Source: Octopus sinensis (taxonomy: Eukaryota). From it: 64,000 nt of DNA. A program made the translations under genes and the position numbers. The stretch is from contig NC_043010.1 in NCBI RefSeq assembly GCF_006345805.1, positions 33,790,001 through 33,854,000 of the forward strand, given 5' to 3'. The notes under the pieces were generated by a model. The model saw only the letters and a program-made list of their open reading frames with translations, was not told where the DNA came from and made no database searches. Below, piece after piece: positions 31,738 through 55,700 of the stretch. How positions within the stretch are numbered: the stretch's first letter is position 1; each line of letters opens with the position of its first letter.

Positions 31738-34700
31738 ATTATCCTCATCATTTAATGTCTGTTTTCCATGCTGACAATGAGCTTCCACACAATTTTCATC
31801 TATTAAATTCACTCACAAGTTATTGGCTGGCCTGAAGGTTGTAATAGAAGACACTTGCCTAAGGTGTCAAACAGTGAGACTGAACCTGAAACCATATAGT
31901 TTCAAAGTGAGCTTCTTACTCATACAACCATGTCTGCACTCACATATGTATATATTGATTTCAAATTTTGATACAAGGCCAGCAATATTTGAAGATGTGG
32001 GTAAGTCAATTATATTGACCCCAGTGCTCAACTGGTACTTATTTTATCAACCCTGAAAGAATGAAAGATAAAATGCTGCTAAGCATTTTGCCCAGCATGC
32101 TAATGACTTTGCCAGGTTACATTATATGTAACACTGTAACAACAGCAATTAAAATCCAATGACTTTTAAAGAACTTCATAAAAGCTACCAGAAATACTTC
32201 TTGATACCAAGATTGTAAAATATTTATGAAGAATTCACCATTTCTTACTTTTTTTCTTCATCACAGGCTGGCACCCTACTTCTAGGAATGTTCTTCCTTT
32301 ATGATATATTCTTTGTGTTTTTGACACCACTGTTTACCGAGGTAAGTTTCATCTTTATTCTTTAATATATATTTTTTGTCTTCTCTACATCTTACTCTGT
32401 TTTCTCTTTCTTCTTGGTTTCTTCATCTGCTGTCCTATTCTTTTAGGTTATTCTGTCGTCATCCCATTTGTCTTCTGTCTCTTCCTTCTCCTTCTGCTTC
32501 TGTCTGCTCCCCCTCTTGCACCCTTTCACTTCTGTTTGCTTCTCCTCCTGCCTCTCCTTCTTCTATTTGCTCCCCCTCCTGCCTCCCCCTTTCACATCTG
32601 TTTACCCCTCCTCATCCCCCCCTCTGCTTTCGTCTGCTCCTCCTTTTGCTTCTGTCTGCTCCTCCTTCTGCCTCTCCCTTCTGCTTCTGTCTGCTGCTCC
32701 TTCTGCCACCCTCTACTGCTTCTCTCTTCCCCCTCCTTCCCCTTTCACTTCTGCCACCCCTTCTATTTGCTCCCCCTCCTGCCTCCTCCTTTCACTTCTG
32801 TTTACCCCTCCTTCTGCTTCTGTCTGCTCCTTCTTCTGCCTCCCCCTTCTGCTTCTGTCTGCTGCTCCTTCTGCCACCCTCTACTGCTTCTCTCTGCTCC
32901 TTCCTTCCCTTTCACTTCTGCCACGCCTTCTATTTGCTGCCTCCCCCTTTCACTTATGTTTTTTTCTGCTTCTGTCTGCTCCTCCTGTCTCCTCCTTTTG
33001 CTTCTATTTGCTTCTTTTTCTGTCTTCTCCTCCTCCTTTTTCATTTTCTTGTAGTAATGGTACTGGGCCATAGTTCCATAAACTATAAGTTCAAAACCCA
33101 ACTATGGTCATGGGTTTGCCATAGTGAGTGAGCCCCATTATATCTAATCTATTACATAATATATTGTAACCCATTGTTATGACATGGTAGCTTTACATTT
33201 CATTGTTTCTTTTTTCCCGTCCTTCTAGAATGGTGAAAGTGTAATGGTTGATGTAGCAACAGGCAAAAGTGGCCATCATTCAGAATCAGTAAGTACAAGA
33301 CGCTACACTTTCAGGGAATTTTTTTTTCTTTTTTTTTGTAGTTGTTTCTTTTCTACATTTATTTTCAGACAACTCAGTTTTTGTTTTCAGAAAACTTTCT
33401 ATTGATTTGTAAATATTCCATTCCTGGCAGGAATCTTAATTAAATTCTAAGACAAATGCTATTTCTAAATTACACATGAAAGTATCAGTATAAGGTTTTA
33501 TAGCTGGGTTTCTAAAAGCATGATCAAGATTTCAAATTTTCACTACAACCACTGTGTTTGGCAAAGACATATAGTTGTTTTTGTGTTTGCCTGACTCATA
33601 TAAAACTGGTTCTACTTGCTAGCTCACAGTTGAGTGGTTAGCAATAGAGACATTCCATCTACTCTAGAATAGAATAATGGAACAAGAAGGATATTTAGCA
33701 CAATTTTTAAATACCAAATTTTCCCTGATTGAATGAAGGTGTTCCAGTCATGACTATCCTGTCCTATTGTGCATTTCATTACCTAAAACTACATTATGTC
33801 CTTCCTTTTTCAAACAGTAGGGGGCAATCTGAGGAAGACTTGGCTGCTATTTTGAGAAGGGTAAGCCATTATGTAGATTCCTTTCCAGTGGCTCAGTGGA
33901 TGTAAAATAGGGGGGGGGGGTAAATGTCTAAAATGTGAGGTGAATCCTCCTTTCTACTAAAGGCATGAGGCCTAAAATTTTGGACGGGGCTGGTCAGTTA
34001 TATTTACTCTGGTATTTCACTGGTACTTAATTTATCGACCCTGAAAGGCAAAGTTGACCTCAGTAGAACTTGAACTTAGAATGTAACGATGAGCGAAACA
34101 CTGCTAAGCATTTCACCCAGTGTGCTAATGATTCTGCCAGCTCACCACCTTAACCATCATGATAATAATACAAAATTTTTTTATGACTGTTAACCTTACC
34201 TTCTCAGATCATAATGGTCGTGGCAGCAGTGGTGGTGGTGGTGGTGAATAAGAAGTGTCCAAAACTTCGTTTCTCTTCATCCCCGTCCCATTTCTTTGTC
34301 ATTCCATGGTTTTCCATTGTTTCCCAGAACTGTGGAATCACTGCATATCAGTACTTTATTCATCTGTCCTTTCATGGACCTCAAAACTCCTCTGTGTGTG
34401 TAGTGGGTTTAAGTAACAAGTGATTAAGAGCCAGCTTGGATGCAAGTAATATTTCTCACAACTGCTATTGCTCTTAAGAGTATTTTGTATCATCTTTGGG
34501 TATCTACTTACACTTTGGAAGATTGGACTATTGAGCATTAAGTAACCTCATCATCATCATCACATTTATCACCAATTCCAACTAGAACTAACCTCTTGAA
34601 AGTTAAATGGTTTGGCCCTGGGTACCTACTTAAGGCTAGGTGGACTGGGCTGTTGGACAGTTAAACAACTTGGTTATGGACACAAGTTGATGATTCTGAG

Positions 34701-37700
34701 CCTGAATATTTGATGATTTTATACATTACTCAAATATGTTCTACATTAGATTATTTGCTTTTTTTTTTTAATATTTATTCGCATTATATTTGCCTGTTTC
34801 AGCAATATACTTCTTTTCTCACACAAGTTATGTTTTTCTTCAACACACGCCATGCTTTCCTTTTCCATACACACACTAAACATGCCTTCTTCAATGCACC
34901 TTATACAAGCTTTCAGTGATAATCTGACAACAGTAATCTATTATGGCATATGGATTATACTTTTTCAGGCTTTTCTCCTCATCTTTACAATTTGATATAT
35001 CTCTTGATATTTGCACCTTACATTTCAATCAGTTTGTTCTCCAGTCGTAAGTGTCTTATCCCTAGATAGATGGTATTGTACAAGACATGAACTAAAAACA
35101 TTTACAGTGGAACCATGGTTTATGAATTTAATTCATTCCTGAAGGCCATTTGTCATTTGAAATATTCAGAAATCAAAACTATTTTTCCCATAGGAAATTC
35201 AAGAGAAAGCACAGCAAATTCAAGCAGGGATGTGTACTGAGTGAAAACTAGACTGCAATTGACACTCTACTGCTGGTATACCCACTTATCACCAACTCCT
35301 GTGTATTCATTGCTTAAGACACTGTTTGTCACAAGACATTTTATTCAAAAAATTGTTTGTAAACCAAGGTTCCACTATATTTCTGAAGACAAGATTTATC
35401 ATCTGAAAGCTTAAAAGTAAAAGACCCCCTTTGGTCAGGAATGACCATAGGATTGCACCTAGAAAGTTCCCCTTCAAGATACAAGTCCAGGCAAAGTTGC
35501 TTATAGAAGACCAGTAGTCACCCATGCATACCAGCCTCCCCCTCTCCATGCCACTGATGTTATCCAAGGAGTAGGCGAAGGCTGATACAGCTTAGCACCA
35601 GTGACATCACAACTCATTTCTACAGCTGAGTGAACTGAAGCAAGATGAAATAAGCTGTCTTGCTCAAGAACACAACACTTCTCCCAGTCTGAGTATCAAA
35701 ATCACTACTTCATGATTGTAAGCCCGACATCCTAACCACTGAGCCATTAATAACAGTTCATTTCTCAGATATTTACACACTTAAGTCTGCAAGTTTTCAT
35801 TTCCCTTTGAAAAAGACCAATGATAGTCTCTCTTTCCCTCTCTCTCTCTCCAAAAAAATACCATCTTCTACATTTCTCTGTTTAAAAAACATATTTTTGA
35901 GATGTATAGAGACAAGCAACAGGGAATTACCTGCAAGTTCTGCACTTACTCGTTTACGTGAATGTTTGTCTCAAAAATAAACCCGCTGTGATTTTTGTTT
36001 CTGTTTTTGTTAGGCTGCCAGTAACAGTATGCCTCGGTCCTTAAATGTACCAGACAATAAAAAAGATGTAAGCTCAACTAGGGAAGTTGTAAGTATTTCT
36101 TGCACCCAGTAAACTTGGTTCTTGTGTTCCTTCATGTAGGTTGCATTAATTTAATCGGATTTTTCACACATACAACCTTGCACGGCTTCTTCCAAATTTC
36201 TTTTCTCCACCATTCTTATCTAATGTGGTGCATTGGCAGAACCATTTGGGCATCAAACAAAACACCTGCAGTATTTAGTTATGACACTTTGTTCTGAATT
36301 CAAAGTCTGACAAGATCAACTTTAACTTTCATCCTTCTGAAGTTGAGAAAATAAGTACCAGGCACATAATGAGGTTGATAGTCTTATAAGGCATTCTAGA
36401 TGGAAATGGAATTGTAACACTGTGGAACAGAATTTAAATTTTTTTTCTTTGGTCAGTAAATGTTATTTCCTATTTGCTTCTATCTAGAAATCAAAGGAAA
36501 TGACTACTATTTCCTTCAAACATTGCTTTTGTGACCTGGACATCAATGTTTTGAAACCGACCTATTTTCCATTACATTTCAGACAGATTCAGTGCCGAGT
36601 TGCTGAAGCAAAAACATTGCTATAGCGAATATTCAGCTTAATACCACAGATTTGCTTATCAGTTGCTTAATCTTAATTATTTGAGCATGTCCCTTAGTGG
36701 CTGACAATATGTGCATCTCTGATCATGAGCAGTAGTAGTAGGGGGGACATCATAGCCATGTGTTGAGAGGGGTTCTTTGGGGCTTGAATAAACGTATCAA
36801 AAGCAAAGTTTGAAGAAAATATTAACCATATTTCATACTTTCTAGAGGTAAACAAATAGGAAATAATAATTGCTACCTAAGGGTAAAAATCATGTTACAC
36901 AGTGTAATATAAACTTCCCTCCAATTTTGTCCCCTAATACACAAAACTGTAAATCATCTTTCCAGGATTGATAAAATGAAATTCCAATCAAGTATTGGGG
37001 TCAATTAACCCCTCCATTACCTGAATCCTTTGATAGAAATCCACCATTATTATCCTTTCCCAGCTGGAGCAGCCATGTATCTCCTTTACACTCCCTTTAT
37101 CATACTTTGGCCCCTCAACACCTGGCACAAAGCCACTTGCCTCAACACTGCACCCCAACTCAGTTGAAGGTTCTTGTCTTGAAAGTTACTTGGTGGCATC
37201 CTTAGTGCTGGTGCCACAAAAAAATGCACCTAGTACACTCTGTAATGTGATTGGATTTAGAATGGACATCCAGCCATAGAAACCATGGCACATTGGAGTT
37301 CATCTCAATTCTCTAGTTTGCCAGATCCTGTTGAACCAGCCAACCTATGACCCACATCAGTATCCAGTCCTTATTGCAGCATGTTGGCTTATGTACCTCA
37401 TTGTATCATGTCAGTGGACCACCAGCTCCTGGAAGAGCCTACTGGATGGGTCAAAGGTTAAGGGTATCCAGCTGTAAAAACCATGCTAAAACAGACTTCA
37501 CCAATGCTGGTGCCATGTAAAATGCACTTGGTTCATTCTGTAAGGTGGTTGGTGTTAGTAAACCTGGTGCAGTCTTCTGGCTTTGCCATCTCTCAAACTG
37601 TCCAACACATACCAGCATGGAAAATGGATGTTAAATGATGTACCCTTTTTCTCTTTTATTAGTTTCAATCATTAAATTGTAGCCATGCTAAGATACCATC

Positions 37701-40700
37701 TTCAAGGGTTTCACTTGTTTAATATCGACCCCTTGTTTTATTAACTTATTTTATTAACCTCACATGGGTGAACAGCAAAGTTGACCATTAACCTAAGTGT
37801 ATAGAACCGTAACCAAATCCTATCAGGTACTTTTGTTTAATGTTTTAACCAGTTCTGCCATCCTTTCGCTATAGATAGATAGTTGATAGACTAATATAGA
37901 CAAATATATAAATGAAAGTGCACTCAACATGTGATGAGGAGTTCTAATATTGGTATAAACTTAACTTGAAATTTCACTGATGTAAAATACCCCTGATGTT
38001 TTATAAGCTCACTTCTGAAGTAACACATTCTGTCTCAATGATCAAGAATTAGAGGAGGTGGGGATGTCACATCTATGAAAAATAAAGTAATGCTTCTCAG
38101 AGTGTAGCTGGTTCCCATCCTAGGTCACCCGAGAAAATGTTTGTGTTTTAAGCTATTTAGTTCCCTGTACACTTATACTCCTATCTCCCCTTCAAACTAC
38201 CCATTTCTGGCCTTTCTGCTGCCATTGCTCCTATTCCTAATCCCTTCCTTGGTCTACAAGCCTTAGGTTAATGAGTACTCCAGTTTTGGTGCCACTAGAA
38301 AACACACCCACTCTATTCTGTAAAGTGGTTGGTGATAGAAAGGGCATCCAACTGTGGAAACCAAACCAAAGATGCAATGTACAAAACCCCAGAATTTTAA
38401 GAATAGTGGCTTCCAATAGGAAATGAACGAGACTGATGACCATCCAACTTGTATCAGCATTGAAAATTATATAACATCATCATCATCATCGTCATTTAAT
38501 GTCCATTTGCTATGCTGGAATGGGTTGGACAGTTTGCTTGAAAATTGGTAAGCTGGGGAGCTGCACCAGGTTTCAATTTTATTTGGCATGGTTTCTACAG
38601 CTGGATGCCCTTCCTAACACCAACCACTCCAAGAGTGTAGTGGGTGCTTTTTACATGCCATCAGCATGGGTACCAGTTACAAAACACCAGCATCAGCCAC
38701 AACTGCGGTCTCACTTGGCTTGGCAGGTCTTCTCAAGCATGGAATATCGCCAAAGGTTCTTTTATTCTTTTTCACATTTCAGTCATTTGACTGTGGCCAT
38801 GCTGGAACACTGCCTTAAAGGGTTTTAGTCGAAGAAATCACCCCCAGGACTTGGTCTTTGTAAGCGTAGTACTTCAGTTAGTCGCTTTTGCCAAACCACT
38901 AAGTTACAGGGACATAAACACACCAACATCAGTTGTCAAGCAATGGTGGGGGAGATAAACACAAAGATACACACACACAGAAATAAATACATACATATAT
39001 ATATATGTGTGTGTGTGTGTGTATGTAATATATTGAGTTCAAATCCATTTCTGAGGTGGTGAATTGGCAGTTGTTAGAGCATTGGACAGAATGCTTTGTT
39101 CTTATTCTATGTGCTTTGAGTTCAAATCCTGCTGTGGTCAATATTGCTTTTCAATCCTTATGGAATTAAGAATTAAAAAAAAGTACCAGTCCAAGGTGCA
39201 AAATAGGCTGAGCTATAAGAACATTGAATCAGCTGCCTCGTGTTATTTATTCCAGCTCTTTGCATTCTGAGTTCAATCCAACCATGACCTACATAAGTGG
39301 TAGACATAACCCATCACCCAGGTTAACACCACCACTTGACACCTTCAGCATTTTAGCAGAGTGCCCTGTCCAACACCCAGGCCAGCTTTCTGGTTTGAAG
39401 CTACTTTTGTCCTTTCCTCCTTCCAGTCTCAGTGACCATGTAAAAGGTCCTAGGTACTGACTTCTCCCACTGGCTAAAAAAAAAAAAAAGTATTAAATAA
39501 AATCCTGATTTATTTTTGCATGTGCTTTTTGTTTCGTTAACAATTAATGTGGAACAATGAGTGTGATATTTAACCACAAAGTGATAGTTCTTTTGTTGTT
39601 GTTGTTGTTGTTTTTTTAATTCTTCTAGAGCAAAATAGACTGTAGTGCCTTTTACTAACTCAGCTAACAAAATAGGAACCTCTCTTTATTTCATGGTTAG
39701 TTGACTGATTGATTGCTTGATAAGACAGGATATTATGAATCCCAGCTTCATGACTTTCCATTGTCATTAGTTGTATTGTTTAACTTGTCTCAGTCTGTAT
39801 GGCTGACAAATAGGCTGCATTCTTAAATCATGGTTGTGTTGTTAGTAGTTAAAAAGGCCATTGTAAATTCAAACTTTACTACCTCAACAGTTACTGAGTT
39901 ATAAGCTTTTAAGGTACTTTATACCGGTTTCTTTATGATTTTTTCTCTCTCTCTCTCTCATACATCAACAATCACAGGTAGAATAGATTTATCATCTTCA
40001 TCATTTTACATCCACTTTCCCTGGTGTCATGAATTGGGCAGATTATCACAGTCCAAATCATTTCTCATTTAGAGAACCTCATCTCACTCATACAAGAAAT
40101 GAAAATATGCAGTGGTTTCCATGGGTTTTCTTATTTTCTATTTTTATGAAAATAGGGGTTCTTTTGAACATGCAGATTCATCACAATTTTTTTTAAAGAT
40201 ATACATACTTGTTTTTTGGGGTTTTTTTCTGCTAAGGTGTATACACTATTGGGTTTGCTCTGTTTGCTTAAATCCTCTAAAAGCTTTGCTGGGTAAATAT
40301 GTCCTCATTTGAATGACTGCTACTGGGTTCTTAGCTGAACACACTATTTTGTGAATGTTTTGTTTGGTGAAAGTTTCTTTTGATGAACATGTTAGGTTAA
40401 AGTGAACATTTTGCTATCCAGTGAACAAACTCCTTCAAGTAAACAAAGCTTTGGATAAGAGATACCTTTTATTATTAGCTAGTCAGAAGAAACAGTGTGA
40501 CTCTCTTAATCTTTACAAACCTTCGTAAGTCTGGTGATTAATGCTAAAGTGATTGTTCCAAATTTTCCCTTGAAAATCACATTTAAAAGTAATTGGAGAT
40601 GAATTGATCAACAACGAATTGACTGGAGACAAATTAACCAACAACAAAATAACCAGGGATGAATTGTCCCAGCACTGTGTTCGTGTGTGTGTGTGTGTGT

Positions 40701-43700
40701 GCAGGCAGGCATTGCTATGAGGTTTTGGGTTCAATCCCACTGCATGGCACCTTAACTGTCTTTGTGTCTTCTATTATAACCTACCAAAACCTTATAAATG
40801 GATTTGGTAGATACAAACTGAAAGATTATTGTGTGTGTGTAGGTGCAGGCATGGCACTAGTTAAGAAGCTAGTGTCTCAAGCATGTGCTCTTGGTTTCAG
40901 TCTCACGGTCTGGCACCTTGGGCGAGTGTCTTCTACTATAGCTCCAGAAACTGAAAGAAGCCCAACGTATATGTATGTTTATTATATATGTGTGTGCTTC
41001 TTTTGTCTTGACATCATGTACATGAGCATCACTTGATGTTCGTTTATTGTTTTCCCTGATGAAATATTACCTTGCTTGGAAACGAGTGAGGGTTGGCAAC
41101 AGGAAGAGTATCCAGCTATAGAACAATATCTATCTCAACAAATTCTGCTAGTTCATGCAAGCATGGAAAAAGGGACATAAAAATGATGATGGTGTGTGTG
41201 TGTGTATGTGAGCATGCATCTTGCTTAGTTTTGCAAAGGTGGCAGTGATGTTGTCATTTCTCCTATCAACAAATCATCCATTTACTTTGTACCTTCGAAG
41301 CCAGGTGAAATAAGAGATCCTTTCTTCGAAAAACAAGTATGGGTTAGAGAAAGGAAGAGCATCCAGCTGTAAATCAATACCGCAGTAACACATTCGTCTA
41401 ACTCAGTGGCTCTCAACCATTTTTTTGTACCAATGGACCCCTTTGATTCCTGTTTTACTCAGGTGGATCCCCCACCCCCCATAGCCATCTGATGTTTTAA
41501 AAAATCCTATTTTATAATTAACTAATTAACTATTATTAGGAATTGCTTAAAATGATTGAAATATTTTGTGTATTGTAGAAGTATAACCAATTTATTGCAC
41601 ATACATTTTAATGACAAAATTTTATATGGACCCCAGTTGAAAACCACTGATCTAACCCATGTACGCATATAACAAAAAAAAGACATAAATCAAACACTTA
41701 CATATACAATATAACTGAAAAAATTTGGTGTCAAGCATAACTAATATATAGATATATATTATAGGATCTTTACCTTTTGCCCGACAGATTTAAAAAATAA
41801 TTTTTGTAACTAAACACTTTCAAAGTTTGTATACTTGTAGAATGTGTCACATAAAACATCTTTTACTCTTCGCATTGTTGAGCAAATTCTGTACTTTGGA
41901 AATTATTTTTTGTTTTATTCAGCTGAATACACATGATTGATTGGTTGAAATTACCAAAATACGATAACTTTAACAAAAAATAACTTCCAAAATACAGAAT
42001 TTTCTCAACAATGCCAAGAGTAAAAGATGTTTTATGTGACACATTCTACCAGTATACAAAATTTGAAAGTGTTTAGTTACAAAAAATTACTTTTTAAATC
42101 TGTCAGTCAAAAGGTAAAGATCCATATTATATATATAGCATGGGTGGAACGGTGCCACAAGAGCTGGCCAGGCCAAAGCCTGCACCAGACTTCTGTGTCT
42201 GTCTTGGCTGGATGCCCTTCCTAACACAAATTTATTTATTTATATCTGCTTATATAGTAACTAAAAATTGTCTGCATTTACTAGCTTCTGTAATATCCCC
42301 TTTTAATGGGTTATGTCTTTATAACCCTTCATTTGCATATCTTCATATTTGAATAATCAGGATTATTCTATTAATGATTGCACTGAGCAATAATTTTTTT
42401 CTTTTTTTTTTCTAATCCTAACAATGCTTTCCATTTAACAACAAGGAACAGGTAAGTGATTAACTCCTCTTCGTCTTTCTATTCACTGCAAAATTATAAA
42501 AAGTTTCTGTCCTGCACTTTGGTTTGTCTTCAAGTGTTTAAAAATTAAATCATAGCAACAATAATATCAAGTGGCTCTAGTTTTGTTGCTTTCTGCTGAT
42601 ATTTTGGCATGCAGTGAAGGCTACTTTTATTGGTGGCATTGTTCAAAGCTGATGATTTCTTTCGTCCTTTAAACAAAACAAATGTTTGTCTCAGCAGTGT
42701 TAGAGGGAATCATCAGTTTCTGCTTTTTTCTGTCTGTCTTTCTTTTTTTTTGCGATTGTACAAAAACCACTAGAAATTGACTTTTAACCCATTAGCATTC
42801 AAAACAGCTGAAACCTACTACCATACTGTTTCAGGTAATTGGTCTATTGCTCTTTGAAGAAAAACAGGCAAAATAAAAAATCACAATCTCACAGTTAGTT
42901 ATGCCATTCCCACACACATCTTTATTATTTTCATCATCTCACCAGCATGACTACAGCCTCATGGCTGAAGCACACACAAAAATAAAAATAACATGCCTGG
43001 TACTCAGGATGTTTGTTATGAATGCTTTCTGTGTTGTTATCTCTTCTCTAGTTCAGCTTTTAATTTTTCCAATCTGCTGGCTTAACATATTGAACATTAT
43101 ATAGACAATCAGTTACTATATTGTTTTTAAAAAAAACCTATCCTGCAGCTGCATTGAGTTAGATCAAGCTGATTGGTTAAAAATATGATCCTCACTAGGT
43201 GAACATTGAAGGTTATATATTTTTATCTAAAATAAATAAGTGATTATGATTAATTATGGGGAATTGACTTGCAGCATGCTAAAAGCTAATGTTTCCCACT
43301 TTATCAGTTCAATCCAGGACCCTTTTGCAAATAACATGTCATATGTCTATATTGTACTATTAATTAAACCCCTGTTTTTAAACAGATGTCCAGCATCTCA
43401 CCTTGAATGTCTTGTAATTCTGAACTTTTTATTACAACTAGCTTTGGTAGAAGCTGGTTCTACTATCAAAATTATCTGCAATTTCATTGATTTTAAAATG
43501 TTTTCATTTTTGAAGTGTTTATGTACTCTTCTACAAATTTATTTCTTCATTTGCTAAACAGTAACTATTTTACAGCAGTTCATATATGTATATGTGTATA
43601 GACGTATATGTGTTATTTTTTAAAATGGTCTTGCTTTATTTAACTTAATCAATTACTTTGTATGCCTATTTTAATAATATTACTGTTTTTTCTCGGCTAA

Positions 43701-46700
43701 TCCACCAGTTTTTCTGTATTTTAAAACCCTGCAACTTTTTCCTTCTTTGTGCGAGGTCTAACATAAGCTTCACAGCACTTCATACATATGTGTTTGTGCA
43801 TATAAATGAGACAAAAAGTACTCTGTACATAGGAGTTTCTTTATAGGTATAGCTGAATCTGTGTGCCAGTGAGTGTCTGAGGGACTTTATTAAAACAAAA
43901 CCTGACAAGTCATCAATGAGCTGTTAAAAGAAACACAACATTTCATATTGCTTTCTCTTTCCATCAAACAGAATGGGTCTGACTCTTCACTTGAACATTA
44001 TAGTTGTTATTAAATTCAACATGTTGCACCCATAATGAAGTTTATTTATATATATATTTTTGGTCAATCAAAATCTATCCCTCACTTCTCAGTAATGGTT
44101 CAATTTTCAAGTTTCCTTCTGTTTTTCTTCCCCCCACCCATTTTCTCCTCAAATAAATGTTTTGGAAGTTAATTTAACATTTTTTCTTAGATGTCCTTTA
44201 ATCCCTTCAGTCACAGATGAAAAAGTAAAACTATTTTAAAATTTTATTTTTTATTTATATTAAAATTGTATTTTAATATAAATAAAAAATGCTTAATTTT
44301 TGGCATGGATAAATTAATTTTGCTAACACTAGGTAAAAAAAATACTAATTTACATCTGCAACCATCCTCTATGACTTGTATGCAAACACTGAGTCAGAAT
44401 CACGTGGTCTTGATTATATATGCGTTTTAGAGGTGTCCAATGAATTGGTAACTGTGACTCAATTATAATTTACACTGAAAAATTGTCCAATACATTGGAC
44501 AAAGTGACTGAAGGGGTTAATGGCCTTGAGTGACCTTGTTTTGTATAGTAATTTTTATGATGGAAGAATAAAGTAATATCTTTCTCCCAAGATTGAATAC
44601 TTGCCTCTTCGAGTCCAATTCTTCACTATGGTTAATGATGTATTTTATCTTCCTAATCAAATCTGTTTCTATGATCCACTTTTTTTGTTTTGTTTTTTAG
44701 TTTTGTTTTATTACATCATGCAAGAAAAAACAACAGTACCTTTGTCTTTCTCTGATATGCCTTACCTTCTTAAATTGCTGAAATTAGTGTTATTGGTGTG
44801 TTTTAACTTGGACTTGAGAATTGGGACAGGAGTGATGCAGGACTTGGGAAGAATGATCAGATAATGTATATAGTGGAACACAATAGGCTGGAGGAAGAGA
44901 AATTAAGGCACTATTTGCTCGTTCAGAGGAGTTAAAATTGTTGTAGTAGTGGTAACAGAGACAGAAGGAGGGGCCACAGCATATTGCTGAGTTAATGATT
45001 GCAGCATGCTAATGAATACATGTTTGCTAGGCAGTTTTGGGAGTGCACCTTTATTCATGTCAGGGATCGATCTGTTGCATCCCAGATATATGCAATTTCC
45101 AATTGTTGGAAATTGCACTTGTTCCTTGTAGATGGTCAGCACTTTATCAACACCTTTTTTTTAAAAATTATTTGTCTGGATCTGAGGGTGAAGTCCATTT
45201 TCTGAAATGGTTTTAGTTAAGATTGGGGTTATTAACTGCATCAACTTTGAAAAGAAATTTTTCAAAATAAGTTTGAAATTTGACATAATGATTTATATTG
45301 TGTTATTACTGGAATCCCCTGATTATGTTGATGATGCTATCGCCTTTTTTTTTTTTTAAATCTGGTGTTCTATCAGTCTCTTTTGCCAAAGCACTAATTT
45401 ACAGGGATGTAAACAAACCAAAACTTATTGTCAAGTGGTGGTGGGACACACACATACACAATGGGCTTCCACACAGTTTCCATCTACCAAAATTCACTCA
45501 CAAGGCACTGGTCAGCCTGGGAGCTACAGCAGAAGACACTTACCCAAGGTGCCATATAGTGGGACTGAACCCCAAACCACATGATTGCATTAGCAAACTT
45601 CTTAACCACACAGTCATTACCTGTGCCTATAAGAGTTTACTCTCACCCCACCCACCAAAGAAAATATCTAAACAGTTATATATCAGAGGTTCACCAAGCA
45701 ATCACAAATATAGTGGCTCAATACTGACCTCGTTTAAAGATCAATTGTTTTCAGATGCAAATAATGACACTTACTGGAATTAGTAAGTTAGTAACAGTTT
45801 TAGGTTTGCATGAATTGGATTGGAAATGAAAACAGGTGATGTTGCTGTGTTAGGAGATGAAGATGAAATAAGGATGGTTGATTTGGTTAAAACCCGTTAT
45901 TTGCTATGGAGCTACTCTTCATTACTCTTCCATGAAGGCTTGATCTTTTTTCTTATCATCATAATCATCATCATTATTATTAATCTCTTCTTTTGTCCAG
46001 TAAGTTCTTGGACCACTACTATAGACTGCCAAAGATTCTCACTCCATCTTTCTGCTGCTTCATTCCCTTCTGAGAAGAGATTGTCCATATTGATCTATTT
46101 GTTTGGTGCTATCTTTTTCCTGTCACTGTCATCATCTTCATGGAGACTGTCTCCATGCTTGCTTAGTCATTTTCAGAAAATTATGTAGTCCCTGTCTCTC
46201 ATTGTCTCTTCTACTTCTATTACAACTGATCTTCTTCCTCTGTATACCATTTCTATCCAGATCCAACTTCTCTCATTACTCTCAACACCCTCTCCCACTA
46301 ACTTTGTATTGTATTATTGTGTTGTACACATTGCAACTCATCATTACTCCTCTACCTCCTGAGTTGATGATGGGAGGTACAAAGAATGTGGGACCTGCCC
46401 CTCTTCCTTGGGATGAAATAATTGAGCGAAAACGAAGTTAACCTCTCTTACCTGTTAATGCGATGCTTCTAATACCCAGAAACATCACCTGTTCAAAACA
46501 CATTGAGGCTATGATTAGACTTTATTAATTAGCTTTGTGGTTGTTCTTTATTTCTTAACAGTTGGAGAGGCTGATAAAAACTAATCTCCTTAAAGCCACT
46601 TCTCTGTTATGGATTAATCAGTAACCTAAGATTGATGGAGGTGGAGTGCATCATTCTGAGAAGCCTCTACCACATCAGTATAATAACTCTTTCCATAACT

Positions 46701-49700
46701 TCAACACATCAGCCTTTCTGTGGATATTTGACTAAGTAGCTCACTTCCTCACCAAAAGTTCAGTTCCACTGCTTGACACCTTAGGGAAGTGCCTTCTTCT
46801 GTAGACCTGGTCTGACCAAAGCTTTGTGAATAGATTTGGTAGATGAAATCTGAAAAGAGTGTGTGTGTCCTTGTATTGACATCATCTGATGGCTGTAACC
46901 ATTTCCAGTCTGCTGTAGAAACTTGCCCAACTAAGGTGGAATTGGGTGGGAAACCTTTCTTGGGAATAGGTGAGGGTTGTTGATAGGTAGAGCATCCAGC
47001 TTTAGGAAATCTGCCTCAATGAATTTCAGTTGATATATGCGAGCATGGAAAAGGGGATATTAAAACAATAATAGCAGTGATGATGGCCTCCATTGAATGT
47101 TCTCACTGCACTTCATTATATAACATGCATGTTCAGAGAAAGATATATATCTGTTTCAGTCTTTGGAATACTATCGTAAGCATCTCGTCCCAAAATCAAA
47201 AGCATAGAACATCGCAAACACCTTGTTCCAAATTCAAAAGCTTTGAGAAAGTCAGTCAGTCAAGATGGGGGTGTAGACAGTTGTCCAAGTTCTCAACCAC
47301 CAATGTTATTCTCTTATAGAAGAATCCACTGAAGTCAAAGAAGAAAATGACAATACTGAAGATAATCTGAACTAGGGGTTCTCAACCATTTTTTATTCAT
47401 GGACCCCTTACTAGTGGGTCCCATAACCATTCAATGTTTAAAAACTAGTCTTAAAGAAACTTTTTCCAAAATTCCAGTTTTGTTTTTCACACTTTAACTT
47501 GTGTAAGTTGAACTATGTAAAATGTTAGAAAAAAACAAACAAACCTAGCTGTTTCTAGCAATACATATCAATACATATATCTAAAGTGAAATTTCGATAT
47601 ATGTTGTATGTTGTATGCAAAAGAAAAACTAAAATGAAGTGTTCTTTACTAATACTTATTTGTCTTGCATCAATCCCAGTTTTGATTTTGTTTTGATTTT
47701 TGTTCTGTATTGGTAATGTGGTGGTGGCGGAGTTGGAATTCATTATATTTTTTCTTTATTCCAGATAACAAACTTTTGGATATATTTCGTTTTCCCTTCT
47801 GTTTAATTTTTACTTTACAACTTAAATGTCATGCAATTTTGTCACTACACAGATCAAGTCACTAGAGAGTATACATATACATATGTATACACATACACAC
47901 ATATATTGCATACTTTTATTAATTTACTGGTTTTCATCATTGGGCTGTGGCCACGCTGGTGGATACTACCTTGTATAGTTTATTTACATCAATCCGAGTA
48001 CTGATTTTTTATTCACTGGAAATTATTTTATCAATCCCAGAACAATATAAGACAAAGTGAACCTGAGTGAGATTTGGACTTGGAATTACATATATATATA
48101 TAATCAGTGAAGCTAATCCTTTTTGTTTTTATTTTCAGCTCCCTCTAGTTTTCCGAGTGCCTCCTTTGTTTCCGTCTCATCCCTCAGTGTGTTTTGTACA
48201 GGAGTCGCTTCTGGGCTTTGGCGACGTCATATTACCAGGTAAGGGTTGCTTCTCTCTCAACGAGGAATAATTCCTATATTCGTTACAACTGTCCTACACA
48301 CCTCTTGAACTCGAGACATAATTGCTTTCCTATCCAAGTTTGAACTTGTCAGGTGACTTCTAAAGAGGAAAATGCAAGCAGTGGTGTTTGGAAGAATTCC
48401 AGGAGAGTACAGTCGCACATTCTCTTGGAAAGGTTACTCAACTAATTGGCATGCTGTCACTTTCTGACAAGCTCCAGCCTTTGGCCCACAAAGGTACTGT
48501 GTCTACTCTCTGTTATTTTCCAACTGCTACAACAAGGGTCTCTGCTTCTCAAAGCTGGCTGGTCCCATGAAGCACTTGACTGACTCATCTCTCCTTTCAT
48601 CATCCACATTGTATCCAACCCTGCTACCACAAGCCCACACTAACCGATATACTCAACTTTTTCTCCTCAGAATGTCAGCCCTCTTGAATTCCTACTCCCA
48701 TGCATCTGCCTTACCTGCAGTCATCAACTTGCCTCAGTTCATGCAGACCATTAACAGCATCAGTCTTGCCAGACTCAGAGATTATGGTCACTACCCCTCT
48801 CTCCAGACCTACTAAAAAACATTGTTTATAACTCTGTCTGCCTTGATTGAGTAAATCTGTGATTGACAGCATTCTAGCCATGATAACTCTGTCCTTTTTG
48901 GGTATCGGGTTCTCTCATTTAAAAAAAACAAAACTGCAGAGTATATTTGAGACAATTTGACTGCTGTTTCTAGCAAGTCAAATCATTATGTAATAGTTCC
49001 CTAATTGTCTCACAAAGCGTTAAACTGTGAGTTAGAAATCATTGTTTGAAGATGTAATACAACATAGATGTTAAGCCTTGTTTTGATGTAGAAAATATTT
49101 TATATTGATGTTGTTATCGTTACAGGTGTACTGGTTGTCTACAGTCATATTTTTGATATCTATGTCCGAGCAAAGAAACTTTATCTCGTTATTTCTATTT
49201 TTGGTAAGCATTGATGACTTTCTTTTCATTGAAACTGAATTTTAATTAGTTTGGTGGCTAATTAGTGTTGATGTTGCTTGTGTTTATTCTATCTTCATTA
49301 TAAGTCATTATGTACCTCATATTTTAAAGATTGTATGATGGTTGTTATGATTTAGTTGCCACATTGAACAGATTTAGCAAATCTCCAAATCTAAATCAGA
49401 TTATGTAGTGATTGTGGCACTGACTCCAGAGGTCCCTGGTTTAAACACAGTATAGTTAAGTATGATTCTGCTGCTACATTGAACAGGTCAAATGACTGGC
49501 AGAATTCATAAAGTGTCAAACAAAATGAATTTTATGGTCTGAGTTCAAATCTTGCCAAGTACAAATCAAGTACTAGGGATCAGTTTAATATTCCTTTAAA
49601 GCATCCTAGATGTGAATAGAATTATAATTGTAAAGATGCAGGTATGGCTGTGTGGTCAAGATGTTTGCTTCTCAGCCACATTTTCTGGTTCAGTCCCACT

Positions 49701-52700
49701 GCATGGCACTTTGCACAAGTGTCTTCTATAGCTCAGGCCCACCAAAGCCTTGTGAGTGGATTTGGTAGATGGAAATAATAAGAAGCTTGTCGTGTGTGTA
49801 TTTAAATAAATACATATATATATATATAATGTTTGTGTCTCCTTGTCTTGATATTGCATGGTAGCTGTAAATGAATGTCACTGTTATACATGCTGTGTCA
49901 TTCAATTCCAATATTCTATGTAAACTTGCCTGGCCATGGGGAAATATTACCATGTTTAGAAACCGGTGGGGGTTGGTGACAGGAATGGCATCCAGCCATA
50001 GAAAATGTTTCAATGTATTCCACCTGACCTATGCAGGCATGGAAAAATAGACAATAAAACAATGATGATGGTCAACTAAGAAAGCCATAGAAGTAATTTT
50101 GCTGGCTGAAGAGGCCTTTGACAGTTTGGTGATTTTTAGAAATAATTTAGCTGCCCTCGTTCAAACAGTCACATAACAATATAGTTGTACTTTCACAGAA
50201 AAGTCTCTGTTTTAAAGACAATAGTAATTGTTGAAGATGATTTTTACTGCAAAGAGACTTTCACTATGTTAGTAATTTGCCAGTCTATCTATGGTGACAA
50301 CCTTGGCATTATTCATGGATTTGAGAATTCAGGCAGCATGTCCAAGAGTGGATGACAAGTCTAGTATGAATGTAAAACCTCCTATTCACATTGGGCAGAC
50401 ATTTTTCAAACTCTGTGCTATTGCAATGAGAGCTCTGGAATTTCATAGCTCTTATCTTTCTGCTCAGCTTGTCTTGTGCCAGTTTACTCAGATGCTTTGG
50501 AACCTTCCTGATCATGCTGAGCTAGGTATCTCTCTTGGAAGCAAGGTTCTCCCATGATTCTGGAATGACATTTGTGTACCTTAACTGATCCATAAAGACT
50601 ACTGTTTTAATGAAGTAATTAAATCAAACTCATTACTTGGAAGGATGTAAAACAGTTGCCCTCAGCAGTATTGACGTAACTATCACAAAGTATTTAGTCC
50701 ACTGCCCTACCAATTCTGGCAATCCACCTTAATTTTGCAGTTCAATAATAATAAAATTAAACTACCATATTTTCTAGCATACAAATCAAATTTTTCTGAC
50801 AAATTTACAGCCAAAACAAGATAGATTGACTTATACAATGAAGATGATTTAGGAGGACTAAAAATTTCATGTGAAATACACCAGGGCTTAGCAAGATAAT
50901 GGCGAGGCTTGAATCTTAACTCTACATACTACATTGATTTGTATGCTGGAAAATACTGTAAAAGCTTATTTAGTTATCATTTTTGTCTGTTTCTTAATAT
51001 GTATATTTATATATTTACTATTCTTGATTTTTTNNNNNNNNNNNNNNNNNNNNNNNNNNNNNNNNNNNNNNNNNNNNNNNNNNNNNNNNNNNNNNNNNNN
51101 NNNNNNNNNNNNNNNNNNNNNNNNNNNNNNNNNTCTTTATTTTTCAAAATTAAGATAAACATAACTTCTTTTTTAATCTAAAATATACTCTTCTGAAATT
51201 CACTGTTATGTGATGAAAAATACTCCTCCATTACTGTTTCTGACCTCGTCTACAGAATTCATATTTTTTCTGTCCAAATGATTTTGAAGACTGCAGAGTA
51301 AATGATAATCAGATGGGGCAATATCCGGTGAATATGGTAGGTGGGGCATCAATTCCCATTCAAACTGCTCCATTCTTTGGAATATCATTCTCGTTGTATG
51401 TGGCTGAACATTATCCTGATGGAAGCATATCTTTTATCTTGAAACCGAAGATGGTTGTTTTTCTTCTAGTGCTGACTTAAGCCGCTCAAGCTGCTTGCAG
51501 TAGATCTCCTTTGTTATCGTTTGGTTGGAGTTTAAAAGTTCAAAGTGGACTAAACCTTTCATATCCCACCAAACAGATAACAACACCATATGTGGTTGAA
51601 GTCCTTTTTTAGTCTGGGGTGTCAGTGTTTCTCCTTTCCCTACCCACTGTCTTCAGCACTTGACATTTTATAGAGAACCCATTTCTTATGAGTCACTATT
51701 CCATCCAAAACTACTTAATTTGTGAAATGTGACGGCAAAGAAGAGCACATATTCACTCTCTGCATGTGATCAGACTTGGAAAGTTTGTGAGGAACCCATT
51801 GACCCAATTTACTAACTCTTCTGATGGCACACAGTTGTTGATGAATGGTTGAATGACCAAACCCAAGCTTCTCTGCTTGTTCCTCAATAGTTACAATGGG
51901 ATTTTGTTCCACCAGGGTTTGCAGGATGTCCTCATTGAGCTCTACAGATCTTCCAGGACAAGACTCGTCTTCTTGGCTGTAGTTCCCAGCTCTGAATTTC
52001 TGGAATCACTGCTGACATTGGCTTATGCTTATTGTCTGATCCCCATATACTGCGTTAATATTCCTTGCACTTTCCATTGTGTTGTTGCCTTTATTGAACT
52101 CATAAGGCAAAATATGCCGAATATGCTCCTTTGTCACTTCCTTTATAACTTGGAAAAAATAACTGTTAAAATCGAACTGCACTCTTCAAAACTTGCACTA
52201 AGTAATTTTACCTTGTACTTATTCTATCTGCTTTTATAGCAAGTTGATGGGGGTGGTTTATCCTGCCCCGCCCTCCAACTTTTAGTTCATGCAATTGAAA
52301 AAATCAGCATTATTTATGGGATGACCCAATATACAATCAAAATAAAAATCAAATTCGATGACTGGCGCCCATGCTGGCAGGGTGCAAAGAGCACCATACG
52401 AGCGTGATCATTGACAGAGCAGCTAACTGGCTTCCATGCCAGTGGCATTTAAAAGGCACCATTCGAGCGTGATCGTTACCAGCATCACCTTACTGGCACT
52501 TGTGCCCATGCTAGTAGGGTGCCAAGAGCACCATCCGAGTGTGATCGTTGCCAGAGCAGCCAACTGGCTTCCATGCCAGTGGCACGTAAAAGAGCACCAT
52601 TCAAGCGTGATCGTTACCAACATCGCCTTACTGGCACCTGTGCTGGTGGCATGTGTAAAAGGATTCGAGCAAGGTCGTTGCCAGTACCGCCTGACTGGCC

Positions 52701-55700
52701 CCCGTGCCGGTGGCATGTAAAAAGCACCCACTACACTCTCGGAGTGGTTGACATTAGGAAGGGCATCCAGCTGTAGAAACTCTGCCAAATCAAGATTGGA
52801 GACTGGTGCATCTATCTGGTTCGCCAGCCCTCAGTCAAAATCGTCCAACCCATGCTAGCATGGGAAGCAGACGTTAAACGATGATGATGATGATGATGAT
52901 GATCTTATGTTTCAGTTAAAACCTGACTTGGTTTTTAATGATTTTAAAAACTTGTTTTAACAACTTTTAAAAATTGGTGTAGGAAAACTTTAGAAATCAA
53001 TTTTTAAAATCTTCAAAAACTAATTTTTTTTTAAAAATCACTAAAAATTAGCATAAAATATTTACTGTTCAATATTTAAGAGATGAGGAATTATGTACAT
53101 TATTTACATTCAATGGATATTTGTCCTCATCTTGTTTGTCGTTAACACAATGTTTTGGCTGATATACCCTCCAGCCTTCATCAGGTATCTTGGGGAAATT
53201 TGGAACCTGGGTTCTCATTCGAAATTTCCCCAAGACACCTGAAGAAGGCTGGAGGGTATATCAGCCAAAACATTGTGTTAACAACAAACAAGATGAGGAC
53301 AAATATCCATCGAATGTAAATAATGTATAAAATATTTAATTTTGTAATGGAAAATATGTTTGCTCTTCCCTATTTTGTATAAATTATCATTCACTACTAT
53401 TCACAGGCTCCTGTATGTTCCCTTCGGCCAAATCTTAAATGGTATTAAATAAACTTGCTGGTTTAGTATTACTTTCCAAGTATAATGGGTTCAAACTCAG
53501 GTCAGAAACAGTACACTACTTCAATGTGCCTCTCTCACACAACAGCTCAATGTAACTTTTGCACAAACAGCTTTTTCCTTCCTTCCTTGCTTTCTTTCTT
53601 CCATCCTAATGGTTCCCTAGATCATTGTAGTGGCATAGAATATTCACTAGGCACAGATATTACTTGTATTTTCCTCTGTAGAGGAAGCTAAAAGCCAACT
53701 TGAGTGAATGGATTTATGTTGGTAGAAGATATCACAGGGCTTTCTCACTTCACAGATCTTCTGTTCAACTCTAAAGTAGTTCCATTTGGAACCAAAAAAT
53801 ACAATTGGTATTTTCTGCAATTCACATTGCCTCAGTGAACTTGACATAACTCAAGAGAAAATAGTTTCAAACAAGATATTCCTCAACAAAAGATAGATTA
53901 GTAAATAAAACTGTTTCCCACTGATAAGGGTATTGGAATTTTGAGTTATTCTACTCTTGCTTCAATTTACCTAACTTGGGTGAGTAAGGCTAAAGTAAAC
54001 AGTCTAAAATGTACTGATGTCCTATCTAGGGGAAATTTTAATTTCATCTCATCTGCTTAATGTTATGGATCTTGAACTAATCAAAAGTTCTGATGAGCTC
54101 CTTGGTGTTCAGGATACATTTAATCTGTTTTATTTACTATTGTCAAAGAAGCTAGGTGGTTATGTGGTGATCTTTCAGTCGAGGAGCTGCCTTGAGAAAC
54201 CGAGTTACAAGTTCAAATTTTGTTCGAACCATAATGTCACATGATTCGTTAAAAGGTAGTAAAAGGGACCCTCTGTTTTAGGGAGAAAAACTATGAAGTT
54301 CATGCTCCTCCTCTTCCTTTTTTCTTTTTATTAAAAGAAATATATATATATTAGCAACAGAGACAGTATTAATACAGAGAGGTAATATTTACCCCCACTT
54401 ATAACAAACTATACTGCAGCAGATACCATGAGAGAAACTCTCATATTGGTTTTTGGTGCAAAATTCACTCTTGTTTACATCACTGGTGGAGATATAAATC
54501 CCTGCTGCCTCCAACATTGAGATAAACAAGAGTGCATTTTTACACCAAAAGCCAATATGAGAGTTTCTCTCATGGTATCTACCACAGTATAGTTTGTTCC
54601 ACATTTCAATGGGGATAAATATTACCTGTCTCTTGTCTCCCATCCCTTTGAAGATTATTCGTATAAGAGAATTGAAGTGGCTTCAACCAGTTTTGAAATT
54701 ACATTCTGGTTTTTTGCTTGTTCTCATAAGATTCCCTCTTGCTCAGCAGTGCTCATCGGGTGTTGTGATTGTGTATCCCTAATTCAGCATTGATCAACTA
54801 GTCCTATGGCAATCAGGTCGTCAATCAACAACAAGGAAATCATCCACCACAGAGCTGCTGGTGGTGTTAATGTGGAACCTTTAGTCAACTCTGATCAAGA
54901 TTTACAACTAAATAGCTGTTGTAAAGCGGTCTTTTATCACTTCTGTATCTATCTTTTGATGACAGTTGTTTCTCTGACAGATATTGTTATATTCTGAAGT
55001 CCTCAACAAGATGGTTCTTTCAGGCACTGTACAACCCCACCACCACCATCATACAGAGTTATTATCCTCAAAAGGTTGGATTGTTATAACATCCACTCAG
55101 TATCACAGTATGATTGACTATATCAGCACAGACACGACTATCAACACAGTCTACGCGTACTCTCGACCTTCTTCTGTCGACCAGCTACTGGTCTATTTAT
55201 TATGGCTGGATACTACCATTTTTACCAGGAGTGTACAGTTTCACTATACAACAGTAGCATCAAGAATCCTTTGTTCCAGAAATACCAGAGTGTAAATTCC
55301 ATCATGCAGTAGGCATACCACACTCCCTCCACTTTCCAATTTATTTTTGTACACCTGTTGTTGTTGTTGTTGTTTAACCCCAAATAGTGAAGATGCTTGG
55401 TGCAGTGGTTAGAGCACCAGGTTTACAATTATGAGGTTGTGGGTTCAATTCCTGGTTCAAGTTGTATGTTGTATTCTTGAGGAAAATACTTTCATGTTGC
55501 TCCAGTTCACTCAGCTGTAGAAATGAGTTGCAACATCACTGGGGCCAATTTGTACCGGCCTTTGCCTTTCCCTTGGATAACATCAGTGGTGTGGAGAGGG
55601 AATGCTGGAATATATGGGCAACTGCTGGTCTTCCATAAATGACTTTGCCCAGACTTGAGCCTCAGAGGGGAACTTTCTGTGTGCAATCCCATGGTCATTC

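Follow-up and report, generated by a model that had tools for sequence, protein, structure and literature searches.

The SPPL2 gene of Octopus sinensis contains an intron of 14,850 nt (positions 33289-48138), and deep inside it lies the stretch AAG/GAACAG/GTAAGT, in which two AG acceptor candidates precede one donor. Positions refer to the window, that is, the whole 64-kb stretch of DNA analyzed here, and slashes mark splice boundaries. The question is whether this site is a two-codon microexon, a zero-length step in the removal of a long intron, or a decoy. We conclude, with a probability of about 0.88, that positions 42446-42451 are a true cassette microexon of SPPL2, 6 nt long and included alternatively, as represented in the RefSeq gene models. 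Since the exon is already annotated in these public models, the original prediction was right, but it does not amount to a new discovery.

The host gene is labeled by RefSeq as 'signal peptide peptidase-like 2A'. Its protein matches the Pfam families Peptidase_A22B (PF04258, 182-254 bits) and, in the N-terminal part, PA (PF02225, 28 bits), both above the cut-off. The YD motif (LYDIFFVF) is encoded by the window exon 32267-32341 and the GFGD motif by exon 48139-48238. A search for the exon with the PAL motif within the window found only a run of N at 51034-51133; the exon is missing because it is located in this assembly gap, and the gap also explains why the C-terminus is truncated in all five RefSeq isoforms of O. 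sinensis. The PAL exon is present in the orthologues from O. vulgaris and O. bimaculoides. The microexon has two possible upstream partners. On the 5' side it is spliced to one of these, the exon that ends at 33288 or the optional one that ends at 36088, and on the 3' side to the exon that begins at 48139; these three ends, as predicted from the raw sequence, are correct in the window exons. The optional exon has a strong acceptor (score 10.1); RefSeq isoforms X1-X3 contain it, as do the gene models from O. vulgaris and O. bimaculoides.

Table 1. Exons and splicing elements around the SPPL2 microexon (window positions).
Feature	Position	Strand	Description
Constitutive upstream exon	33229..33288	+	Encodes NGESVMVDVATGKSGHHSES, the equivalent of the TM6a helix plus linker; ends ..HHSES; donor TCA/gtaagt
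Optional cassette exon, 75 nt	36014..36088	+	Encodes AASNSMPRSLNVPDNKKDVSSTREV; ends ..STREV/gtaagt
AG-free zone, 56 nt	42388..42443	+	Precedes the microexon acceptor; O. bimaculoides has no AG here either
Distal polypyrimidine tract T7-C-T10	42394..42411	+	Lies 35-52 nt before the exon
Two CUAAY branch-point consensus motifs	42412..42422	+	CTAAT 42412-42416, CTAAC 42418-42422
UGC motif (TGC)	42425..42427	+	Between branch site and AG; 3 nt past CTAAC, 19 nt before the exon
Microexon acceptor AAG, weak	42443..42445	+	Score -3.4; median of 13 real acceptors 6.7
Microexon GAACAG, 6 nt, Glu-Gln	42446..42451	+	GAA CAG; length divisible by three, no stop codon
Microexon donor GTAAGT	42452..42457	+	With the preceding CAG forms the window's only CAGGTAAGT
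Downstream exon	48139..48238	+	Encodes LPLVFRVPPLFPSHPSVCFVQESLLGFGDVILP (LPLVFRVP..GFGDVILPG); beta-hairpin region and GxGD catalytic motif

All sequence elements named in the original prediction, namely the T-tract, CTAAT/CTAAC, TGC, and AAG/GAACAG/GTAAGT, were found in their expected places at 42394-42457 on the plus strand (Table 1). The exon has canonical AG/GT flanks, and the pattern AG/GARCAR/GY occurs in the intron only at this site. The T-tract ends 33 nt ahead of the microexon AG, and the putative branch A at 42421 lies 24 nt ahead of it. The AAG is the first AG past the branch motifs; its use as the acceptor is implied by isoforms X1, X3, and X4. The donor has the top score on both strands of the window, and the region from the branch point to the exon is predicted to be unstructured (z = +0.85). 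The order of the elements is atypical: here the pyrimidine tract is followed by CUAAY, UGC, and AG, whereas canonically the branch site precedes the tract.

The main evidence comes from the RefSeq proteins. Isoform X4 (XP_036364755.1) is identical to isoform X5 (XP_036364756.1) except for the residues EQ at 432-433, whose placement is unique, between ...GKSGHHSES and LPLVFRVP. The same two residues are carried by X1 (XP_029644537.2 / XP_036364752.1) and X3 (XP_036364754.1) and are absent from X2 (XP_036364753.1). X1 combines the cassette with EQ, and X2 has the cassette without it; X1, X2, and X3 were located by exact look-up of proteins built from the window sequence. When the window exons are spliced and translated, with 42446-42451 included or left out, all five isoforms are reproduced exactly, which confirms the prediction of a 6-nt, frame-neutral EQ microexon joined to LPLVFRVP. 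Shifted splice sites cannot encode these residues, as a donor moved by +6 would yield VS and an acceptor moved by -6 would yield FQ. Thus, the inclusion and skipping products both exist as RefSeq gene models, that is, as computational XP models with protein sequences. Gnomon generally keeps alternative variants only if they have transcript or RNA-seq support.

Protein searches found no transcript-derived octopus ORFs. The junction-peptide search had a single match, a Logan ORF of 85 aa that belongs to a distant cephalopod. The corresponding contigs match the window (81% identity) solely within the exon and extend upstream of it for no more than 595 nt, so that they are uninformative on the microexon. 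Neither isoform X5 nor an intronic ORF of 70 aa had a record in the contig index when looked up as exact sequences. The six-frame translation of 42236-42900, used as a protein query for orthologous intron contigs or a repeat family, gave no match among 8,000 candidates, and an Rfam scan of the intron gave only sub-threshold matches to AT/TA-rich miRNA models at simple repeats.

An alternative explanation is a chance pseudo-exon, that is, a decoy pair of splice sites in a long AT-rich intron that was spread by the annotation pipeline from few or mis-aligned reads. Some features of the site agree with this. The proximal acceptor AAG is no better than 28% of random AGs, and strong donor-like octamers occur on the antisense strand at the background rate: AGGTAAGT is found four times on the plus strand, two of these being real donors, and twice on the minus strand. 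The donor by itself is not beyond chance; the composite of elements is. T-tracts of this strength number six on the plus strand of the window and one on the minus strand, and only 0.6% of positions (4.2% under a relaxed definition) have a strong tract 23-80 nt upstream. Given this rarity, about 0.01-0.08 co-occurrences with a non-exonic AGGTRAGT are expected per window, which argues against a decoy. A stepwise filter of plus-strand AGs, requiring in turn an AG-free zone of at least 50 nt, a pyrimidine tract, CTAAY, TGC, and a good donor within 30 nt, reduced 3,329 candidates to 238, 54, 5, 4, and finally 1, the microexon site; on the minus strand none survived. These filters were picked after the site had been seen, but they match an architecture that had been published earlier. 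Thus, the full combination of a long AG-free zone, pyrimidine tract, CUAAY, UGC, and strong nearby donor is unique in 64 kb on both strands. The isoforms also count against a pseudo-exon: EQ is present in three of them, in both cassette contexts, the intron contains a single canonical source for an extra GAACAG in transcripts, and the product is the family-consensus EQLP. The weakness of the acceptor, the frequency of AGGTAAGT at background level, and the fact that the skipped junction aligns with Lottia without gaps would point to a plain chance decoy; this view was dropped because isoform X4 carries EQ.

The comparison with other octopuses was restricted to the genus Octopus, in which identity of the neutral background is already as high as 92.5-99.4%. 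The O. vulgaris sequence is identical across 42207-42840. In O. bimaculoides, a perfect block of 52 nt covers 42409-42460; it ranks 24th among 891 blocks in an intron with a background identity of 92.5% (p ~0.02), and the 100-nt windows around it fall into the top 3% in this comparison. The T-tract of O. bimaculoides is 7 nt longer and still consists entirely of pyrimidines, all changes in it being from pyrimidine to pyrimidine. Both CTAAY motifs and TGC are invariant in the three species. Hence the microexon and all its splicing signals are kept across the three species, and the conservation proposed originally as a check in related cephalopods is indeed observed in O. bimaculoides. This again speaks against a pseudo-exon, a reading that can, on the other hand, point to the absence of EQ from two independent sister-species annotations. 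The gene models of O. vulgaris and O. bimaculoides omit EQ, and the DNA is intact in both; the missing residues could reflect a pipeline miss or low inclusion. Taken together, we regard a pseudo-exon as very improbable.

Another scenario is that the site serves, instead of or alongside the microexon, as a zero-length recursive site (ratchet point), with the CAG at 42449-42451 used as an acceptor and the intron of 12-15 kb removed in two steps. Use of this CAG would regenerate TCA/GTAAGT or GTT/GTAAGT. The two upstream donors both read .../gtaagt, and therefore the regenerated 5' splice site would be equivalent to the original one. The direct juxtaposition of CAG/GTAAGT at 42449-42457, the only instance of its kind in the window, the length of the intron, which is large for this gene, and the conservation of the site in Octopus also agree with a ratchet. 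Drosophila ratchet points have a pyrimidine tract that abuts the AG. The octopus site resembles them in having a juxtaposed CAG/GTAAGT deep in a long intron, but its CAG has no abutting tract, an AG 6 nt upstream makes a coding exon, and the intron is only ~12-15 kb long. The recursive site fits poorly because purines prevail upstream of the CAG: pyrimidines account for only 7 of the 18 positions from -20 to -3, as counted from the sequence, the acceptor score is -5.6, and 1,509 of the 3,333 plus-strand AGs (45%) score at least as high. Moreover, reading on from the branch motifs, the AAG comes before the CAG. The six bases before the donor are coding in three annotated isoforms (X1, X3, X4), so the site makes an exon product; an additional recursive use of the CAG is still compatible with this. 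A literature search for recursive splicing in cephalopods found none. The ratchet, offered originally as the alternative to the microexon, is thus unneeded, and we consider it unlikely.

A combination of the two functions can also be described. In such a dual-use site, two AGs separated by 6 nt would compete: the AAG (42443-45) would include EQ, and the CAG (42449-51) would provide a zero-length recursive step leading to the skipped mRNA. If so, the choice between tandem acceptors at a ratchet point would set the isoform ratio, and lophotrochozoans would have their first demonstrated recursive splice site. This possibility is doubtful.

Returning to the cassette microexon, its closest parallels are the neural microexons of vertebrates and Drosophila that depend on the eMIC-domain proteins SRRM3/4 (PMC8797185; bioRxiv 10.1101/2024.09.17.613571; PMC12871342). 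In such microexons, the AG exclusion zone and the pyrimidine tract are long, UGC is located near the 3' splice site, and CUAAY, the branch-site consensus used in that work, is strong (PMC8797185). They also have a strong 5' splice site and a pyrimidine tract and branch point located far from the AG, with UGC between the branch point and the AG in 74-79% of cases (bioRxiv 10.1101/2024.09.17.613571). The octopus exon is likewise short (6 nt) and frame-preserving; its 5' splice site is very strong, and its proximal 3' splice site is weak. A strong pyrimidine tract lies far from the AG within a long AG-free zone, and a CUAAY branch motif is followed by UGC before the AG is reached. Further parallels are the predicted lack of structure in the upstream region and the conservation of the flanks. 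One difference is that the CUAAY motifs of the octopus site are downstream of the T-tract rather than upstream. Recognition may proceed via the donor, which is perfectly complementary to U1, the distal T-tract, the CUAAY sites, UGC, the 56-nt AG-free zone, and the weak AAG. This SRRM3/4-like arrangement of cis elements suggests that inclusion is probably regulated and possibly neural. No link between SPPL2 and microexons was found in a literature search.

The position of the insert can be interpreted by comparison with human SPPL2a, where the loop-6 beta-hairpin has been described structurally (PDB 9k92/9k93; PMC12745688). The product of exon 33229-33288 contains GESVMVDVATG, which aligns to the human TM6a segment GESIMVELAAG; octopus LPLVFRVP aligns to NEKLPVVIRVP, the beta1 region with the conserved Pro384, and octopus GFGD to GFGD412. 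Thus, the site of insertion corresponds to the interval between TM6a (human Met369, Ala373) and Leu383-Pro384. The linker from TM6a to Leu-Pro has 9 residues in human SPPL2a, with no known alternative insert, and 8, 10, 33, or 35 residues in octopus, as set by the two optional exons. In human SPPL2a, deletion of either hairpin strand, beta1 or beta2, abolishes activity (PMC12745688). Inclusion of the microexon adds Glu-Gln directly before Leu-Pro of LPLVFRVP. On the luminal side, the linker that leads from the TM6a cap helix to strand beta1 of the substrate-docking hairpin, next to the GxGD aspartate, would thereby become longer. Glu would stay at position -2 from Leu-Pro, and the residue at -1 would change from Ser or Val to Gln. 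The insert could tune substrate gating.

The microexon was originally argued for by homology as well, with EQ said to supply the E-x-LP that precedes this motif in SPPL2 proteins. Every isoform keeps E-x-LP, the skipped junction encoding E-S-LP and the cassette junction E-V-LP, and in this respect the argument does not discriminate. It holds for the particular form EQLP, the commonest one in invertebrates (7 of the 13 non-octopus homologues read), as this consensus is restored by the microexon only. Thus, the argument is partly discriminating.

The origin of the exon may be considered by comparison with Lottia and Paralvinella, which have the same phase-0 intron with E-x at the end of the upstream exon. 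In Lottia, this exon ends with GAACAG/GTAAG, identical to the octopus microexon and donor over 11 nt. For this reason, the microexon could represent the orphaned last two codons of an ancestral exon, split off when the octopus lineage gained an intron. A duplicated exon end was considered as another source; three E-x exon ends compared by eye had nothing alike beyond GAA...gtaagt, and this candidate was rejected.

In summary, a 6-nt exon, belonging to a class often missed by gene annotation, was found from raw sequence alone; in the models of O. vulgaris and O. bimaculoides, EQ is absent and the DNA is intact. The finding leaves the general picture unchanged. The octopus SPPL2 exon is a candidate member of a cephalopod eMIC microexon programme. 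It lies at the edge of the loop-6 beta-hairpin and, together with the 25-residue cassette, yields four linker lengths, all with Glu-x-Leu-Pro, providing a small testable case of splicing-tuned geometry beside the active site of an intramembrane protease.

Used as a protein query, the joined exons match O. sinensis 'signal peptide peptidase-like 2A isoform X5' (P0002, XP_036364756.1), to which every exon of the window is 100% identical, and the host protein carries the Pfam domains Peptidase_A22B and PA. Therefore, the greater part of the SPPL2 gene of O. sinensis lies in the window, on the forward strand, with exon 1 located upstream of the window. All five RefSeq isoforms of O. sinensis (X1-X5) end in ...ISIF-EFSKSLTSS without TM8-9 and the PAL motif, and splice from 49203 to 57281 with a break in the reading frame because an assembly gap (51034-51133, 100 N) removes the PAL exon. 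This gap stands for ~6.2 kb of the O. vulgaris locus (L006, 66226-72473), where the PAL-motif exon (GYLLG..QPALLYLVP..WTGDFL) is found at 66238-66396.

The original prediction placed a 6-nt microexon encoding Glu-Gln before LPLVFRVP, and this exon can be traced in public gene models. The second member of the 90% cluster of P0002, isoform X4 (P0022, XP_036364755.1, 501 aa), corresponds to X5 with EQ added at residues 432-433 (...GKSGHHSES-EQ-LPLVFRVP). The sole AG/GARCAR/GY in the 14,850-nt intron is 42446-42451, and moving the neighbouring donor or acceptor by 6 nt would produce VS or FQ, never EQ. The remaining exon combinations were assembled from the window and looked up by exact sequence. 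The cassette exon with EQ yields isoform X1 (XP_029644537.2 and XP_036364752.1), the cassette without EQ yields X2, and the cassette with EQ minus exon 13740-13790 yields X3; the cluster holding X1-X3 and the O. vulgaris orthologues, represented by P0026 and near-identical to the query, was found via cluster listing and exact look-up. Translating the spliced window, with 36014-36088 and 42446-42451 each either included or left out, reproduces every one of the five proteins from residue 28 onwards; therefore, the microexon is already a RefSeq annotation. EQ is present in three of the five isoforms, with both upstream partners (the constitutive exon and the cassette). As a rule, Gnomon retains alternative variants only if transcript or RNA-seq alignments back them. 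The isoform matches show that 42446-42451 acts as an alternative cassette exon of 6 nt, with Glu-Gln as its product. EQ is missing from the annotations of O. vulgaris and O. bimaculoides, neither of them made by NCBI, although the DNA is intact in both. X1-X3 include the 25-residue cassette, as do the models of O. vulgaris and O. bimaculoides, and X4 and X5 lack it; the 17-residue exon 13740-13790 (TNLKKINEDVSESPPT) is left out of X3 and of one O. vulgaris model.

Features of the microexon site and neighbouring exons (window positions; a slash marks a splice junction)
Feature	Position	Strand	Remark
Distal T-tract T7-C-T10	42394-42411	+	read from sequence
CTAAT	42412-42416	+	read from sequence
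CTAAC	42418-42422	+	read from sequence
TGC	42425-42427	+	read from sequence
Acceptor AAG	42443-42445	+	read from sequence
Microexon GAACAG	42446-42451	+	read from sequence
Donor GTAAGT	42452-42457	+	read from sequence
Upstream exon encoding NGESVMVDVATGKSGHHSES	ends 33288	+	donor TCA/gtaagt
75-nt cassette exon encoding ...STREV	36014-36088	+	
Downstream exon encoding LPLVFRVP...GFGDVILPG	starts 48139	+	

All splice elements named in the original prediction are present, and the flanking exon boundaries it used are real. All three possible exon ends before Leu-Pro (constitutive exon, cassette, microexon) read GAA-NNN/gtaagt, resulting in ES, EV, or EQ. By itself, the microexon donor is unremarkable: in the window, the donor motif AGGTAAGT has four forward-strand occurrences, of which two are real donors, and two antisense ones. 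Under a simple model derived from the 13 real acceptors of this gene (median 6.7), AAG reaches -3.4 and CAG -5.6, and ~28% and ~45% of all AGs, respectively, score as well. The alternative proposal, a zero-length recursive splice site at CAG/GTAAGT, is unlikely even as an additional use of the site, as no pyrimidine tract abuts this CAG, an earlier usable AG precedes it, and none of the observations requires it.

For the microexon, a combination of elements can be considered. T-tracts comparable to that of the microexon are rare, with six on the forward and one on the reverse strand of the window, and only 0.6% of positions have such a tract 23-80 nt upstream (4.2% under a relaxed definition). 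All AGs of the window, on both strands, were screened in steps that required at least 50 nt free of AG, then a pyrimidine tract, a CTAAY, and a TGC, and finally a good donor no more than 30 nt away. The microexon site was the single survivor; these criteria were set post hoc, yet they are the published hallmarks of SRRM3/4 (eMIC) microexons. In such microexons, the AG exclusion zone and the pyrimidine tract are long, the CUAAY is strong, and UGC lies near the 3' splice site (PMC8797185); their 5' splice site is strong as well, and the tract and branch point, being away from the AG, create a weak 3' splice-site context (bioRxiv 10.1101/2024.09.17.613571). A distal tract and an unstructured region between the branch point and the 3' splice site have also been described for microexons (PMC12871342), and the octopus microexon region is predicted to be unstructured (MFE -7.3 kcal/mol, z = +0.85). 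Unlike in the canonical layout, the octopus CUAAY sits 3' of the T-tract. Because exon definition cannot work on 6 nt, recognition probably relies on other elements. The probable ones are the perfect U1 site, the branch sites of CUAAY form, and the combination of a distal T-tract and a UGC enhancer on which SRRM-type factors act; in that case, inclusion of the microexon would be under regulation, possibly in neurons.

Several other features of the region were observed. A T9-C-T9 tract (33318-33339), followed by several tag/cag acceptor-like sites, lies 30 nt 3' of the constitutive donor 33289. A possible foldback or MITE-like element lies ~300 nt upstream of the microexon: an imperfect palindrome (41752-42136, 385 nt, arms ~84% complementary), also found in O. 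vulgaris. A second microexon-like arrangement, ~230 nt before the last exon, consists of a T-tract (56992-57019) and caag/GAAACTGAAGGAAGCAAG/gtaatg (18 nt, 57030-57047), and is in none of the annotated isoforms seen; a weaker 25-nt candidate begins at 56706.

The O. vulgaris intron is 99.4% identical (42207-42840 fully so), and therefore too near for an informative conservation test. The orthologous intron of O. bimaculoides (protein P0028, locus L008, GCA_001194135.2, from the representative search) is 92.5% identical over aligned bases. Here, the microexon lies inside a 52-nt perfect block (42409-42460; rank 24 of 891), which at this identity has a chance of ~0.02 at a given place, and the 100-nt windows around it are in the top 3%. 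In the three-species Octopus alignment, CTAAT, CTAAC, TGC, AAG, GAACAG, and GTAAGT are unchanged; changes in the tract are limited to pyrimidine-to-pyrimidine substitutions and one 7-nt pyrimidine insertion, and the zone is still AG-free. The conservation proposed as a check in cephalopod introns is seen within Octopus. A chance decoy spread by annotation is very unlikely: three isoforms carry EQ, the 6 nt have a single possible source, and both the composite splice architecture and this conservation speak against it. Other intronic blocks perfectly identical in O. sinensis and O. bimaculoides (44921-45042, 46024-46130, 44424-44512, 35355-35437, and 34431-34508; 78-122 nt), the longest exceeding the longest exact block across either neighbouring coding exon, contain neither an open frame nor a match to Rfam, and may be conserved non-coding elements.

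Among homologues, Lottia gigantea has the same phase-0 intron before LP, of only 260 nt, following an exon that ends in ...TGEQ; in the annelid Paralvinella the intron is ~1.4 kb and the preceding exon ends in ...SGEM, and Saccostrea lacks an intron at this position. The octopus skipped junction SES/LP aligns without gaps to Lottia GEQ/LP, so E-x-LP is already present without the microexon; the cassette junction REV/LP, aligned by HMMER to NEKLP of human SPPL2a, has it as well. Hence the E-x-LP argument originally advanced for the microexon is non-discriminating. What stands is that EQ-[LIM]-P, the commonest form among the 13 non-octopus homologues compared (seven have it: Lottia, Saccostrea, and proteins P0030, P0031, P0032, P0033, and P0037), arises among octopus junctions only via the microexon. 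The Lottia exon before the shared intron ends in GGAGAACAG/gtaaga (locus L001, 9861-10180), giving the same GAACAG/GTAAG as the octopus microexon and donor; this could be coincidence (EQ plus consensus splice-site bias) or descent of the microexon from an ancestral exon end. Another Lottia intron stretch (L001, 5389-7070) contains ~30 tandem 57-nt copies of the next exon's first 12 codons (KKYRCNSDKSNN), some with stop codons.

In summary, the microexon is already known as an annotation, since public gene models contain it; a literature search brought up neither this nor any other SPPL2 microexon. The new remarks, of modest interest, concern its eMIC-like architecture and its position at a hairpin edge. 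Octopus GESVMVDVATG aligns to the TM6a helix of human SPPL2a, where Met369 and Ala373 cap the inhibitor (PDB 9k92), and the LP of LPLVFRVP aligns to Leu383-Pro384, where the beta1 region of the loop-6 hairpin begins. Deletion of strand beta1 or beta2 of this hairpin abolishes SPPL2a activity, and pairing of the hairpin with a strand of the substrate has been proposed (PMC12745688). As the insert falls between TM6a and Leu-Pro, the optional exons set the TM6a-to-beta1 linker to 8, 10, 33, or 35 residues, with Glu at -2 from Leu-Pro kept in all four forms. It is plausible that the optional exons could influence substrate gating.
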